Source: Octopus bimaculoides (taxonomy: Eukaryota). From it: DNA of 46,139 nucleotides. Below are positions 11,558-45,640 of the stretch, in pieces. The notes beneath the pieces were generated by a model. It did not search any database, was not told where the DNA came from, and was given only the letters and a program-made list of their open reading frames with translations. Position 1 is the stretch's first letter. Every line of letters starts with the position of its first letter. The DNA is taken from positions 46,639,853-46,685,991 of the forward strand of contig NC_068991.1 of assembly GCF_001194135.2 (NCBI RefSeq), in the 5' to 3' direction. A program made the position numbers and the translations under genes.

Positions 11558-11596
11558 GAACGATATTTCGGCATCTAGCATGCCTTCCACAGGTTC
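11558..11596 (-). ncRNA. Candidate minimal type I hammerhead ribozyme (variant core)
   Basis: GAAC-CUGUGGA-A-GGCAU gcuag AUGCC-GAAA-UA-UC-GUUC; stems I (4 bp) and II (5 bp) pair perfectly; palindromic stem III AUAU. Confidence 0.65.
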
Positions 11597-11774
11597 TAAA
11601 AATAAACTTGTCAATCTACTTCCTTTTTGGTAATATTTTATAGGATTGAGGTAACTCCTCAAGTAGGTATACAGAAGCACTTTTCTTGTTTTGCTTCTGT
11701 ATACCTACTTGAGGAGTTACCTCAATTCTATAAAATATTACCAAAAATTAAGTAGATTGACAAGTTTGTTTTTT

Positions 11775-11813
11775 AAACCTGTGGAAGGTACGCTAGATGC
11801 CGAAATATCGTTC
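11775..11813 (+). ncRNA. Second, slightly decayed hammerhead copy in the opposite arm
   Basis: AAAC-CUGUGGA-A-GGUAC gcuag AUGCC-GAAA-UA-UC-GUUC. Confidence 0.55.
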
Positions 11814-11899
11814 ACTTGATAATAATGGCACTTTTTTTGCTCCTAATAATAATAATAATAATAATAACAAGTAGGACAATCAGAATATAGAAACAGATA

Positions 11900-12078
11900 T
11901 CATCATTTCTTTTATAGGCACACGGCTTGAAATTCTGGTTAGTACTCATTTTTATCGCCCCCGATAGGATGACAGGTAAAGTCGACCTCGATGGAATTTG
12001 AACTCAGAAAATAAAGACGGACGAAATGCTGCTAAGCATTTTGCCCGGCGTGCTAACGATTCTGTCAGCTCCCCGCAT
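11900..12078 (-). mobile_element. SINE family B (tRNA head plus Nin/Deu-like domain), partly deleted
   Basis: GTAAAGTCGACCTCG...GAATTTGAACTCAG...GGCGTGCTAACGATTCTG, shared with many copies in the window. Confidence 0.85.
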
Positions 12079-12204
12079 TGGAAACAGACATAAGATTGGT
12101 TAGATATAGTACTTTTTGATAACTGGCACTATTGCGACCCAGAGTCAGTGAAACTAGTATATAATAATGGTTAGCACAGCATTCTCTATGACTATACAAT
12201 ATAA

Positions 12205-12335
12205 TCAATGCAGCAGTTACTGCAAACAAACCAGACCTAATTATTAAAACCTGCTAACGAAATCTGTCATTAAGCAGATATCTCTGTTCCACTAGATTTA
12301 ATCCCTATACGAGACAAGGAGGAATCCACACTGTA
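12205..12335 (+). pseudogene. Degraded restriction-like endonuclease segment of an R4/R2-type LINE
   Basis: AVTANKPDLIIK / EICH*ADISVPLD after one frameshift, matching the RPD..E/D.S.P.D motif. Confidence 0.5.
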
Positions 12336-13761
12336 GTTGGTACAAAAAGAAATTAGAGCGCTCTAGTCTTCACTAAAGAAGGATAAACTGTAAAATGAGA
12401 TCCGGAGAGAAGACATGGTGACATGATCGTAGTCGAAACGTCTGTTCAGGTTTCATTTGGGAACAAGACAATAATGAATGCACAGAATACAAAATGAAAA
12501 TACATATATTGGTAAATAGAATTATCGAAAATGTGGAAAATAAAATCATAAACGATCTGTTGTACTTTAATAGAATATTTATATAGCTCTGAAATCAGGT
12601 AACATAAGACATTTTATGACTGCATATTTCTATGATATTAATTATACTATCATATAAACTATACCATTATACAAAGATATATACATATTAAAAAGGCGTC
12701 CTGATTATATCCTAATATATTCAATTTTATACGAAGATAATATGATGGTCCGAATTATACATAATTTAAAACACAGAATCAGTTTTAACATTTTTATATA
12801 ACGACTCAGATAGCAATGGAGTCAGTCAGAAAGATATTGATCCTAATTACTTAACGCCGGAAATGAATTACTTCACACCGGAAATATACTGATATATGCA
12901 GTTCGTTTTATATGTATGTATGTATATATATANNNNNNNNNNNNNNNNNNNNNNNNNNNNNNNNNNNNNNNNNNNNNNNNNNNNNNNNNNNNNNNNNNNN
13001 NNNNNNNNNNNNNNNNNNNNNNNNNNNNNNNNNNNNNNNNNNNNNNNNNNNNNNNNNNNNNNNNNNNNNNNNNNNNNNNNNNNNNNNNNNNNNNNNNNNN
13101 NNNNNNNNNNNNNNNNNNNNNNNNNNNNNNNNNNNNNNNNNNNNNNNNNNNNNNNNNNNNNNNNNNNNNNNNNNNNNNNNNNNNNNNNNNNNNNNNNNNN
13201 NNNNNNNNNNNNNNNNNNNNNNNNNNNNNNNNNNNNNNNNNNNNNNNNNNNNNNNNNNNNNNNNNNNNNNNNNNNNNNNNNNNNNNNNNNNNNNNNNNNN
13301 NNNNNNNNNNNNNNNNNNNNNNNNNNNNNNNNNNNNNNNNNNNNNNNNNNNNNNNNNNNNNNNNNNNNNNNNNNNNNNNNNNNNNNNNNNNNNNNNNNNN
13401 NNNNNNNNNNNNNNNNNNNNNNNNNNNNNNNNNNNNNNNNNNNNNNNNNNNNNNNNNNNNNNNNNNNNNNNNNNNNNNNNNNNNNNNNNNNNNNNNNNNN
13501 NNNNNNNNNNNNNNNNNNNNNNNNNNNNNNNNNNNNNNNNNNNNNNNNNNNNNNNNNNNNNNNNNNNNNNNNNNNNNNNNNNNNNNNNNNNNNNNNNNNN
13601 NNNNNNNNNNNNNNNNNNNNNNNNNNNNNNNNNNNNNNNNNNNNNNNNNNNNNNNNNNNNNNNNNNNNNNNNNNNNNNNNNNNNNNNNNNNNNNNNNNNN
13701 NNNNNNNNNNNNNNNNNNNNNNNNNNNNNNNNNNNNNNNNNNNNNNNNATATATATATATG

Positions 13762-42878: not shown

Positions 42879-42881
42879 TTC

Positions 42882-43011
42882 TTAAGGGAAGCATTGCTTC
42901 TCTTGCTTCCATGGACTGTATACATATGATATGATATGATATATATATATATATATATATATATCATATGTATACAGTCCATGGAAGCAAGAGAAGCAAT
43001 GCTTCCCTTAA
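42882..43011. repeat. Perfect 49-bp inverted repeat around (AT)n
   Basis: 42882-42930 is the exact reverse complement of 42963-43011. Confidence 0.97.
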
Positions 43012-43119
43012 AAATCATGGTTCTGGGTAGCATATTGTCAAGTGGTGAGGTGGGGAAAAACAGACACAAAGACAATACGCATACACACACACACACATAT
43101 ATATTAATATAAAATATAT

Positions 43120-43445
43120 GTGGTAAGTAGCTTGCTTATCAACCTCATGGTTCAGGGTAGCATATTGGGCAAGTGTATGTATGTATGTGTGTATGTGTGT
43201 ATTTATGTATGTATGTATGTAGGTATGTATGGATGTTGTGTATATGTTTGTGTGTCTGTGTTTGTCCTCCCAACATCGCCTGACAACCGATGTTGGTGTG
43301 TTTACGTCCCTCTAACTTAGCGGTTCGGGAAACGAAACCGACAGAATAAGTACTAGCATAAGTCCTGGGGTCGATATGTTTGACTACAGGTGTTGCTCCA
43401 GCATGTATGGCCGTAGTCAAATGGCTGAAACAAGTAAAAGAAGAA
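43120..43445 (+). mobile_element. SINE family A with internal deletion
   Basis: GTGGTAAGTAGCTTGCTT head, microsatellite, 3' half. Confidence 0.85.
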
Positions 43446-45129
43446 ATAAAATATATATATATATATATATATATATGTATGTATATATATATNNNNNNNN
43501 NNNNNNNNNNNNNNNNNNNNNNNNNNNNNNNNNNNNNNNNNNNNNNNNNNNNNNNNNNNNNNNNNNNNNNNNNNNNNNNNNNNNNNNNNNNNNNNNNNNN
43601 NNNNNNNNNNNNNNNNNNNNNNNNNNNNNNNNNNNNNNNNNNNNNNNNNNNNNNNNNNNNNNNNNNNNNNNNNNNNNNNNNNNNNNNNNNNNNNNNNNNN
43701 NNNNNNNNNNNNNNNNNNNNNNNNNNNNNNNNNNNNNNNNNNNNNNNNNNNNNNNNNNNNNNNNNNNNNNNNNNNNNNNNNNNNNNNNNNNNNNNNNNNN
43801 NNNNNNNNNNNNNNNNNNNNNNNNNNNNNNNNNNNNNNNNNNNNNNNNNNNNNNNNNNNNNNNNNNNNNNNNNNNNNNNNNNNNNNNNNNNNNNNNNNNN
43901 NNNNNNNNNNNNNNNNNNNNNNNNNNNNNNNNNNNNNNNNNNNNNNNNNNNNNNNNNNNNNNNNNNNNNNNNNNNNNNNNNNNNNNNNNNNNNNNNNNNN
44001 NNNNNNNNNNNNNNNNNNNNNNNNNNNNNNNNNNNNNNNNNNNNNNNNNNNNNNNNNNNNNNNNNNNNNNNNNNNNNNNNNNNNNNNNNNNNNNNNNNNN
44101 NNNNNNNNNNNNNNNNNNNNNNNNACACACACACACACACACACACACACACACACACACACACACACACACATACACGTGCATATATTTGCGTATGTGT
44201 GTACATACGTACGTATGTATACATCTATGGATGGATGGATGGATCTCGGAGCTTCTGACTGTGTTTACTGTATTCAGTCGTTCGATCAAATAACTCACTG
44301 CATTGTAATGTTAGTGGCCGTGTATTCCATGGACGTGTGTGCCCTTAAAATAATTCTCAGGCAGCAAAGTTATGATGCGACAGTGCGCAAAAAAATTATA
44401 CCTTTTGAATGGCGGTTGTGATTGATTTCGTAAGGCTCTCAGATACTTTCTGTCAGTTTCAGATCCACTTATGAAGTTTGAGTCGGTCCGAAGACGGAAC
44501 GAAATAACACTTGTCCAATACGCAACACAGTCGGATTGAACACGAGATCGCGAAGCGACTTTTTAACCTTTCAGCCATACAATAGCTACACACACTACCA
44601 CACACACACACACATACGCATACACACAATGTATATGTTTGTGTGTGTGTGTGTGTGTCTGTGTCTATGTAATGACAAACGATGTATGTATGTATGACAA
44701 ACGAAGTGTGTCATCTTATAAAGAGTAAAAACCCTGTACAACAAATAATATCAAAGCTAGATTCTGCACAGGACTTCTTTATGTTTTTTTTCTATTTTTG
44801 CTGAAGTTGGACTTCCATGTGCAACTATTGATTCCAGATTAAAAGTCCCTCAGAACAAAGCAGTGTGTGTCAACAGGACTTGGCGCCGTTATTATTGTTG
44901 TTGTTACTATTATTGATGGTGGCGGTGGTAGTGGTGGTGGTGTTATTCTTAGTCGCTTCTTTCTTTGCAGCGTTTGTGTTTCCTACGTTTCTTTGTTGGT
45001 TTTTGTTGTTGTCGTTGTTCTTGTTGTTGTTTGGAGGAAGAGGGATTTTTTTTTTTCCTTGTATTTTTGTATTTTACTTTCAACAGAGTATATGAATATA
45101 TACATCATGCTTGACTGCTTACGTCGTAA

Positions 45130-45205
45130 AAGCAGACCAACCAACCAACCAACCAGCCAGCCAGCCAGCCAACCAACCAACCGGCCGACAAACCAGCCAG
45201 CCAAC
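45130..45205. repeat. (CCAA)n/(CCAG)n tetranucleotide repeat
   Basis: Directly visible. Confidence 0.9.
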
Positions 45206-45402
45206 CGACACACCAGGAGACTGTCCAACCCGATAATGAAAGAACAATGACTGCATCATCTATGTATCGCTCTACCTACCTACTTATCTATCTACCTACT
45301 TACCTACTGCTTATATAGTAATCTATATGCCTCCATACAGTTATATTAGTTTGGATGTGTTTGTGTGAGAATATATATATATATATATATATATATATAT
45401 AT

Positions 45403-45640
45403 GGGAGAATATACAAATAATAACAACAGACGAGGACAGGTGGTGTAAATAACAAAAGGATATATTAGTATGACGCTCGGGAATACGGAAAGTCTTTGAC
45501 GTTTCGAGCTACGCTCTTCAACAGAAAGAATACGGAGACAAGGAGAAAAGCACGGAGAAAAAAAATTGAATAGTGTTCAGTCAACGGTCAATCCCTCACA
45601 ACTATGTACCGTATATATATATGAATGCATGTATATATAT
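45403..45640 (-). mobile_element. Short non-coding element inside (TA)n carrying a hammerhead fold (Penelope pLTR-like)
   Basis: Bounded by TA tracts; hammerhead at 45493-45529; its 5' ~43 bp is repeated in inverted orientation, ending at 45766. Confidence 0.6.
45493..45529 (-). ncRNA. Candidate minimal type I hammerhead ribozyme (variant core)
   Basis: UCUUU-CUGUUGA-A-GAGC gua GCUC-GAAA-CG-UC-AAAGA; stems I (5 bp) and II (4 bp) pair perfectly; palindromic stem III ACGU; GUC cleavage triplet. Confidence 0.65.

Follow-up and report, generated by a model that had tools for sequence, protein, structure and literature searches.

Hammerhead ribozyme motifs of the minimal type I known from Penelope-like elements (PLEs) were identified at two loci in a 46,139-nt stretch of the Octopus bimaculoides genome, the whole of which is referred to here as the window. 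In all three copies core position 6 is U where A is the norm, and this U6 is their sole departure from the published hallmarks of PLE minimal hammerheads. To our knowledge, the hammerhead core is taken to have an invariant A6, which almost every genome-wide census hard-codes. The best reading is that a known motif is present here in an A6U form shared at the level of a lineage, which is probably catalytically impaired.

Motifs and host elements at the two loci

The first locus (site 1) contains the following features:

11558..11596, minus strand: hammerhead motif copy 1, minimal type I (read from the sequence; covariance model 20.1 bits, E 5.7e-4)
11775..11813, plus strand: degraded hammerhead motif copy 2 (relaxed descriptor, matching 11774-11814; covariance model 14.5 bits, E 0.045)
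11539..11679, minus strand: inverted-repeat arm A, one unit of a short element (inverted-repeat search)
11692..11832, plus strand: second inverted-repeat arm (arm B), facing arm A head-to-head (inverted-repeat search)
11478..11530, minus strand: incomplete third copy, covering the unit's first ~53 nt (direct-repeat search, 92% identity, spacing 152)
11844..11867, no strand: (TAA)8 microsatellite beside the insertion (read from the sequence)

From 11596 to 11558 on the minus strand, copy 1 reads GAAC CTGTGGA A GGCAT GCTAG ATGCC GAAA TA TC GTTC. It consists of a helix I of 4 bp (GAAC/GUUC), the box CUGUGGA with U6, a bulged A and helix II (GGCAU/AUGCC) with the loop GCUAG, followed by GAAA, UA and UC. 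Its stems pair completely, helix III is the palindrome AUAU, the G10.1-C11.1 pair is present and cleavage is predicted after C11562. Copy 2 lies in the opposite arm of the inverted repeat and has U6 as well. It is decayed by one mismatch in helix I (AAAC/GUUC) and by one wobble and one mismatch in helix II (GGUAC/AUGCC).

The arms of the inverted repeat are 141 nt long and 94% complementary, with a spacer of 12 nt. Arm A has its 5' end at the repeat centre and its hammerhead close to the outer 3' end. The partial third copy follows in tandem downstream of arm A, with a unit of ~150 nt and a period of 152 nt; the tandem extends over 1.35 units only, plus one inverted unit. A shorter (TAA)n at 11467-11477 forms the other flank, which places the insertion within (TAA)n. 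A comparison of the arms shows nine differences in 141 positions (6.4%). Three of these nine differences fall within the 39-nt hammerhead motif, so the motif has not been spared since insertion and the site 1 copies appear to be dead. The inverted repeat is predicted to fold back into a long hairpin (about -226 kcal/mol). This hairpin draws matches to microRNA families, which are spurious and below threshold. No target-site duplication was found around the inverted repeat, as the outside flanks (AAGAGACG... and ...TTTTTTTGCTCC) are unlike. A MITE or foldback DNA transposon was considered and judged very unlikely: the inverted arms are present, but the flanks are not a target-site duplication.

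The second locus (site 2) contains three features:

45493..45529, minus strand: hammerhead motif of the second element, minimal type I (read from the sequence; covariance model 21.9 bits, E 1.4e-4)
45403..45611, minus strand: non-microsatellite stretch of about 209 nt bearing the site 2 motif (sequence)
45371..45402, no strand: (AT)16 array flanking the element (Tandem Repeats Finder and sequence)

The motif reads TCTTT CTGTTGA A GAGC GTA GCTC GAAA CG TC AAAGA from 45529 to 45493 on the minus strand. Here helix I has 5 bp (UCUUU/AAAGA), the box is CUGUUGA with U6, and the bulged A is followed by helix II (GAGC/GCUC, loop GUA), GAAA, CG and UC. The stems again pair completely, with the palindrome ACGU as helix III and the G10.1-C11.1 pair present; the predicted cleavage site is after C45498. 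The opposite flank is a TA-rich array (45612-45753). The element is a single unit, and no further copy of it was found in the window. A preliminary description had given the same two readings, which agree letter for letter with the minus strand, and had called the host elements unrelated. This holds for their sequences, since the local alignment of the site 1 unit with the site 2 element outside the motif scores 15, compared with 16.6 +/- 2.3 in shuffles.

Both motifs and their elements are clear of assembly gaps: the uninterrupted block 9212-12932 holds site 1, and that of 44125-46139 holds site 2. Between the two sites, however, a span of 34 kb contains 11 gaps (among them 30483-31013, 32592-33244, 38132-38209, 39288-39376 and 43493-44124), so the distance between the loci and their relative strand are unreliable. 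The presence of U6 hammerhead motifs is independent of both. No RT motif, RT/GIY-YIG or PLE ORF was found in the whole window. The link to PLEs therefore rests on the motif architecture and the insertion pattern. The missing ORF is compatible with a PLE origin, because most genomic minimal hammerheads have been reported as dispersed copies without an ORF (PMC4209133).

Detection of the motif and comparison with known hammerheads

For the search we used 35 descriptors, comprising the consensus, all single substitutions at 11 core positions and a U3-A8 covariant. Only the A6->T descriptor matched in the whole window, at exactly copy 1 of site 1 and site 2. Applied to 300 Markov-1 random windows it gave a single match in total, or ~0.003 per window. 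With position 6 free and one stem mismatch permitted, the relaxed descriptor found exactly three sites in the window, all of them U6; random sequence gave 0.01 per window. An A6 hammerhead motif was found in the window neither by the strict and relaxed descriptors nor by the covariance model. This model, R1, was trained on 10 A6 hammerheads adjoining PLE ORFs of other animals and recovered the three sites with scores of 21.9, 20.1 and 14.5 bits, while the runner-up reached 9.9 bits (E 1.5). Control motifs score 27-57 bits in R1, so the motifs of the window clearly belong to this group, though at some distance. The Rfam hammerhead models gave no match in the window, either at the gathering threshold or with the cutoff relaxed to E <= 10. 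They also missed a genuine PLE hammerhead beside an ORF (L001:6158-6201), which makes this negative result uninformative. It had been proposed that the shared core is unlikely to be random decay, and we regard a shared A6->U by chance as very unlikely. The covariation of the stems, also part of that proposal, stands in so far as the stems of the two motifs differ yet pair fully; it is, however, partly expected, because the motif is recognised by its pairing stems, and it is not covariation in a homologous family.

Within the box C3-U4-G5-A6-N7-G8-A9, the consensus is broken only at position 6, where all three copies have U6; the five remaining fixed bases of the box are kept. At copy 1 and site 2, every one of the ten further invariant bases of the core is intact. 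G12-A13-A14, the A15.1-U16.1 pair and H17 are present in both (GAAA-UA-UC and GAAA-CG-UC, with C17). Control PLE hammerheads from about 10 families have A6 in 13 of 13 cases. In all 13 a bulged base also occurs between A9 and G10.1, which is U in the controls and A in the three window copies. The previously described double deviation is thus reduced to one: U6 is unusual, whereas the extra base is a published PLE hallmark.

Among the closest known systems is the minimal hammerhead of metazoan PLEs (Cervera and de la Pena, 2014; PMC4209133), which shares with the window motifs a short open helix I (4-5 bp, type I), the extra base at A9/G10.1, G10.1-C11.1, and GAAA followed by the palindrome ACGU or AUAU and UC. 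The palindromic helix III of 4 nt, noted already in the preliminary description, implies that the motif acts as a dimer. Dispersed truncated copies, opposite-strand pairs and the recovery of the three sites by R1 are further points in common. Besides U6 and the bulged A, the window motifs differ in their helix II of 4-5 bp (usually 6-8 bp in the controls) and in having no PLE ORF nearby; a location in the pseudo-LTR of an element with RT and GIY-YIG, one mark of the group, is not seen here. Lunse, Weinberg and Breaker reportedly also studied metazoan PLE minimal hammerheads in 2017.

A natural change at the same position is known from the A6C hammerhead of phage Bcep176 (Perreault, 2011, PMC3088659; Naghdi, 2020, PMC7151607). 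It demonstrates that variants of position 6 can persist in nature and keep metal-dependent activity (PMC3088659; PMC7151607). Unlike the window motifs, it has C as the substituted base, and as a bacterial-phage hammerhead it possesses full stems and tertiary contacts in place of the minimal dimeric form of PLEs. Its activity has been measured. Animal non-LTR retrozymes (Cervera and de la Pena, 2020, PMC7229834; Li et al., 2026, 10.64898/2026.07.22.740005) are short AT-rich noncoding units with a type I hammerhead in head-to-tail arrangement, and have been proposed as non-autonomous derivatives of PLE pseudo-LTRs (PMC7229834; 10.64898/2026.07.22.740005). Site 1 may resemble them in its 152-nt unit and partial tandem copy. 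Retrozyme hammerheads, however, are canonical with loop 1-loop 2 contacts and occur in arrays from dimers to long multimers, whereas the window motifs are minimal with a helix I of 4-5 bp and no closed loop 1, site 1 has only 1.35 tandem units and an inverted copy, and site 2 is single. The CChMVd viroid hammerhead (De la Pena and Flores, 2001, cited in PMC4209133), as summarised in the citing paper, has an extra unpaired base at the same place but is a type III hammerhead with canonical A6. The closer parallel for the bulge is the PLE minimal hammerhead, in which it is the rule.

Origin of the U6 core

We give about even chances to the reading that both loci are dead PLE-derived copies, which would have received U6 from their source lineage or lineages and spread regardless of a core that is poor in Mg2+. 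The sources would be short, non-autonomous or heavily truncated PLE derivatives, and both elements would have inserted into AT-rich microsatellites. This agrees with PLE insertions, which include partial tandems with an inverted copy and are biased toward microsatellites (PMC8557442). Minimal hammerheads are also found paired across the two strands at distances of 100-700 bp (PMC4209133), and such opposite-strand pairs occur at the control loci L003 and L011. Helix III would form only when two copies pair, as they could in a tandem transcript, and the cut would follow C17.

U6 was probably already present in the reverse-transcribed RNA and would then be a property of the source lineage or lineages. 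It is found in both arms of site 1 despite their divergence and in the unrelated site 2, and thus most likely predates insertion; at the family level, U6 is deduced from two independent loci. Alternatively, the inverted repeat of site 1 may stem from a subsequent duplication at the DNA level, in which case its two U6 copies are not independent evidence on the RNA template.

The U6 core is expected to cleave poorly in Mg2+. Mutagenesis of the CUGA turn gave low activity in every single or double mutant other than the C3/G8 swap (PMC9901934), and the A6C variant found in nature has almost no activity when Mg2+ is low (PMC7151607; PMC3088659), so weak cleavage in Mg2+ is predicted for an altered A6. 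Spread despite poor cleavage is conceivable because PLE integration does not need hammerhead cleavage: PLE insertion in vitro is unaffected by catalytic mutants of the hammerhead (PMC11167929), and hammerhead-free PLE clades still proliferate (PMC8557442). The motif may largely be carried along by inheritance, or else be kept for a role outside catalysis.

What speaks against an impaired core is the perfect retention of the ten core bases in unrelated elements, which hints that selection on the core may be continuing. Such conservation in otherwise unlike elements favours a rival to which we assign about half the weight of the first reading, namely that U6 together with the bulged A is a lineage-specific, competent hammerhead that cleaves tandem or dimeric transcripts and is under selection in several PLE-derived families, perhaps aided by Mn2+, a protein or a chaperone. 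A Penelope-derived lineage with a fixed U6 core, competent as a dimer and perhaps with an altered need for metal ions or cofactors, is possible to the same limited degree. The same rare transversion in two unlike elements, the intact helices and the fact that the window holds only the U6 form all fit this. There is also the precedent of Bcep176, with good activity of about 0.3 per min in Mn2+ and poor activity in Mg2+ (PMC7151607). The published PLE searches used fixed catalytic boxes, with a bias conceded by their authors (PMC4209133), and would therefore have missed U6. The CUGA-turn mutants and A6 in all PLE-associated controls argue against competence, as does the already weak in vitro activity of PLE minimal hammerheads (PMC4209133).

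Private decay, in which the source families have A6 and each old copy mutated A6 to T after insertion, is rather unlikely. The copies are indeed old and decaying, as seen in the divergence of the site 1 arms, motif included, and two independent mutations suffice if the site 1 repeat is a later DNA duplication. Nevertheless, an A->T transversion at one given site is estimated at ~1-3% per copy for such divergence, and two independent ones at the same site at ~1e-4 to 1e-3. Moreover, A6 copies should outnumber U6 copies if A6 were the normal state, and the window has none. Nor does it contain any of the remaining 33 core variants with a single substitution.

A non-hammerhead origin, as a chance likeness, a foldback or MITE terminal inverted repeat or an unrelated imperfect hairpin, is close to refuted: the stable site 1 hairpin with its microRNA-family matches, the Rfam result and the minimum-free-energy folds of the monomers (predicted rods with U4-G5-U6 paired to 15.x nucleotides) point that way, but three sites were seen where about 0.003-0.01 are expected per window, E-values of the covariance model reach 1e-4 to 6e-4, a target-site duplication is absent beside the inverted repeat, Rfam is uninformative, and the A6 revertant of site 2 has an even more stable competing alternative fold, so that the rod is not consistently favoured by U6.

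Implications of a recurrent U6

If the family consensus proves to be A6, the two loci represent ordinary decay of ordinary repeats. The recurrence of U6 in independent, mobilisation-competent elements would otherwise mean either that the core is tolerant or that a dead hammerhead is still copied. A dead core that is kept and copied would bear on the role of the hammerhead in PLE-type elements, whose insertion in vitro does not require cleavage. If the core tolerates U6, this tolerance would be broader than the mutagenesis of model ribozymes suggests and would bear on mechanism and metal-ion dependence. An active U6 lineage, if true, would constitute the first A6U class of hammerhead in nature, and censuses with a fixed CUGANGA would have systematically missed part of hammerhead diversity.

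Hammerhead motifs in the window

For identification of minimal hammerheads in the window, we applied a descriptor to both strands in 35 versions, covering the consensus, the U3-A8 covariant and, for 11 core positions, all single substitutions. Matches came solely from the version with U instead of A at core position 6 (U6); they were exactly the two motifs of the preliminary description (sites 1 and 2), whose reading agrees base for base with the window sequence. A looser descriptor, with any base at position 6 and one mismatch allowed per helix, found three sites and no others in the window, where 0.01 were expected.

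Hammerhead motifs in the window
11596-11558, minus strand: site 1 motif, GAAC-CUGUGGA-A-GGCAU-gcuag-AUGCC-GAAA-UA-UC-GUUC
45529-45493, minus strand: site 2 motif, UCUUU-CUGUUGA-A-GAGC-gua-GCUC-GAAA-CG-UC-AAAGA
11774-11814, plus strand: third motif, found by the looser descriptor

At sites 1 and 2 the helices are fully paired, the G10.1-C11.1 pair is present, positions 15.1 to 16.1 form a 4-nt palindrome (AUAU and ACGU, respectively) and C17 stands directly before the predicted cleavage site. A6, replaced by U, is the sole conserved core base missing. Registers that restore a canonical box (e.g., UUGAAGA at site 2 read as U3 to G8) were rejected by inspection, as they break helix II and leave surplus bases before GAAA. 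The site 2 hammerhead is flanked by a direct repeat of the 9-mer TCCGTATTC (45478-45486 and 45533-45541, minus strand), which does not extend helix I.

In 300 random windows of equal dinucleotide make-up, the A6-to-U descriptor gave one match in total. As a descriptor-independent test, a covariance model was built from ten hammerheads beside the ORFs of Penelope-like elements (PLEs) of other animals. Run unfiltered over the entire window, it ranks the three sites on top (21.9, 20.1 and 14.5 bits; E = 1.4e-4, 5.7e-4 and 0.045), followed by a best further match of 9.9 bits (E = 1.5). None of the three sites was detected by the Rfam hammerhead models. These models also miss a genuine PLE hammerhead adjoining its ORF, and their negative result was therefore given no weight. 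Descriptor and covariance model agree that the core shared by both sites exceeds chance in this window, as had been proposed. Two short retroelement fragments, unrelated to each other, carry PLE-type minimal hammerhead motifs, and this is a real, non-random feature; that the motifs have nothing to do with hammerheads is very improbable.

Comparison with hammerheads of Penelope-like elements

Four features define the metazoan PLE minimal hammerhead, among them a helix I of 4-5 bp (Cervera and de la Pena, PMC4209133). They also include the G10.1-C11.1 pair and a palindromic 15.2-16.2/loop 3, which implies action as a dimer (PMC4209133). All four are present in both window motifs. For comparison, PLE loci of other animals were fetched via the RT-endonuclease protein and the hammerhead was then located beside each ORF. 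The baseline query was the PLE protein Poseidon_Ac (supplement of PMC11167929) with 4775 homologues; among the 120 of these matches listed, the named hosts are insects, spiders and lizards, and they served as the A6 baseline. Taken from about ten PLE families, the 13 control motifs all carry a bulged base between A9 and G10.1, which is U in the controls versus A in the window motifs, and all 13 keep A6.

The preliminary description had regarded U6 and the extra A as a double deviation. The U6 part stands, but the extra base is a PLE hallmark; this half of the deviation is textbook knowledge for these elements. Since the architecture is PLE-typical, bulge included, U6 is the single real anomaly. 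The finding is a new variant on a known PLE motif and not a new ribozyme class. A natural A6U was not described in the literature searched; natural A6C is known from phage Bcep176 (PMC7151607, PMC3088659).

One control family (loci L005, L006 and L007; Logan runs SRR21069208, SRR21069092 and SRR21069184) shows a G3/C8 swap. Its hammerhead (L005:2664-2707, also in L006 and L007) lies just 3' of an intact 847-aa PLE ORF of an AT-rich organism and reads GUGAACA-U-GAACAU...AUGUUC-GAAA-UA-UU, a natural exchange of the C3-G8 pair with A6 kept. In the literature found, U3-A8 is the sole natural covariation described; G3/C8 appears there solely as an engineered rescue.

The two elements and their surroundings

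Elements carrying the motifs
11539-11679 and 11692-11832: inverted-repeat arms of site 1, 141 nt, 94% complementary, 12-nt spacer
11478-11530: partial third unit in tandem after the first arm, 53 nt of the 5' part, period 152
Site 2 element: unique sequence, about 209 nt long, with an (AT)16 array on one side and a TA-rich array on the other

The site 1 units meet with their 5' ends in the centre and carry their hammerheads close to the outer 3' ends. The entire insertion sits within (TAA)n. The inverted repeat lacks a flanking target-site duplication, a point against a MITE. Insertions of PLEs are described as favouring microsatellites and as forming partial tandems to which an inverted copy is often added (PMC8557442); minimal hammerheads occur paired on opposite strands, 100-700 bp apart (PMC4209133). 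Two control loci, L003 (3600-3643, minus; 7184-7227, plus) and L011 (969-1010, minus; 4372-4416, plus), carry one hammerhead per strand with the ORF between, independent evidence that inverted hammerhead pairs are a normal PLE insertion pattern. Neither an RT nor a PLE ORF is present in the window, so sites 1 and 2 are regarded as truncated or non-autonomous derivatives. Most genomic copies of minimal hammerheads were reported to be of this kind (PMC4209133).

Outside the motif, the elements of sites 1 and 2 have no similarity, which bears out the earlier view of them as unrelated. An inverted repeat with 75-nt arms (45599-45673 and 45692-45766; 95% complementary, 18-nt spacer) abuts the site 2 element on its 5' side. 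The inner part of this repeat consists of TA repeat, the outer 13 nt (CAACTATGTACCG / CGGTACATAGTTG) of unique sequence. The bases with which the site 2 element begins thus have an inverted second copy on the far side of the TA array. This duplication may echo, in miniature, the head-to-head layout of site 1.

The site 1 inverted repeat (11539-11832) is predicted to form a near-perfect hairpin of about 141 bp (about -226 kcal/mol for a 368-nt transcript), and any read-through transcript would be long double-stranded RNA. Models of plant and animal microRNA precursors match the inverted repeat strongly, though below threshold (MIR821, E = 2e-22; mir-559 on both strands); these matches are artefacts of the long hairpin. 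Direct repeats at 11429-11464 and 12041-12076 (86% identical, containing GGCGTGCTAACGATTCT) flank the insertion on both sides and look like tRNA-derived SINE copies, which places site 1 in a nest of repeats. A weak tRNA-model match lies at 11334-11388.

Both elements lie in gap-free blocks (9212-12932 and 44125-46139) and touch no gap. Eleven gaps separate the two sites (among them 30483-31013, 32592-33244, 38132-38209, 39288-39376 and 43493-44124), so their distance and relative strand are uncertain; as the loci were treated as independent, this is immaterial to the claim. Further gaps lie outside the two-site span (660-808, 5565-6110, 6721-6730, 7217-7336 and 9137-9211). The window also holds frame-shifted remnants of Tc1/mariner-type DDE transposases on the minus strand (25415-26206, 33671-34006 and around 3792). 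Their nearest relatives in the database, from eukaryotic contigs and arthropods, reach 58% identity, which is also the value of the best match for the stretch 25415-25966. At 17300-17706, a 200-nt unit is present in two tandem copies (96% identical). Within this unit is a SINE-like segment (with TTCTTTCTGCTATAGGCACAAGGCCTGAAAT) that is found again in pieces at other places in the window.

Origin and predicted activity of the U6 core

The site 1 arms now differ at 9 of 141 positions, and 3 of these fall within the motif, which indicates that these copies are not under constraint. U6 is present in both arms despite this divergence, the unrelated site 2 element carries the identical A-to-T transversion, and an A6 motif is absent from the whole window. 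By our own estimate, the joint probability of independent A-to-T changes at one given site is about 1e-4 to 1e-3. Based on these comparisons of sequence, U6 probably goes back to the source lineage or lineages; private decay, by which it would have arisen separately in these copies, is unlikely for the same reasons. Inverted pairs of PLEs usually form at insertion; provided that this one did too, the RNA template already had U6, and a U6 element would have been transcribed and mobilised. In searches for related copies, both elements matched only the local site 1 repeats when compared with the window by blastn, a 42-aa ORF across the site 1 unit had no match in the protein collection, and exact-pattern scans for both sites, strict and loosened, gave 0 matches in metagenome and prokaryotic genome contigs.

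The published evidence on the predicted activity of a U6 core points both ways. The preliminary description suggested that it may be active as a dimer or in tandem transcripts. Two otherwise unlike elements have kept the ten other core bases and every helix intact, which suggests a core still under selection, and A6C retains good activity with Mn2+ (PMC7151607). Against this, A6C is nearly inactive at low Mg2+ concentrations (PMC7151607), and PLE minimal hammerheads are weak even with the consensus core (PMC4209133). An active U6 core seems rather doubtful and is ranked below an impaired one. Selection of U6 for a rod-like hairpin via a U6-A15.1 pair was also considered and rejected; constrained folding gave a two-fold effect at site 1 and one in the opposite direction at site 2.

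PLE insertion in vitro is unaffected by catalytic mutants of the hammerhead (PMC11167929), and PLE clades lacking it still proliferate (PMC8557442), so that a crippled core could spread. On the likeliest reading, which has about an even chance, U6 would be a lineage-level variant, impaired in catalysis and carried along.
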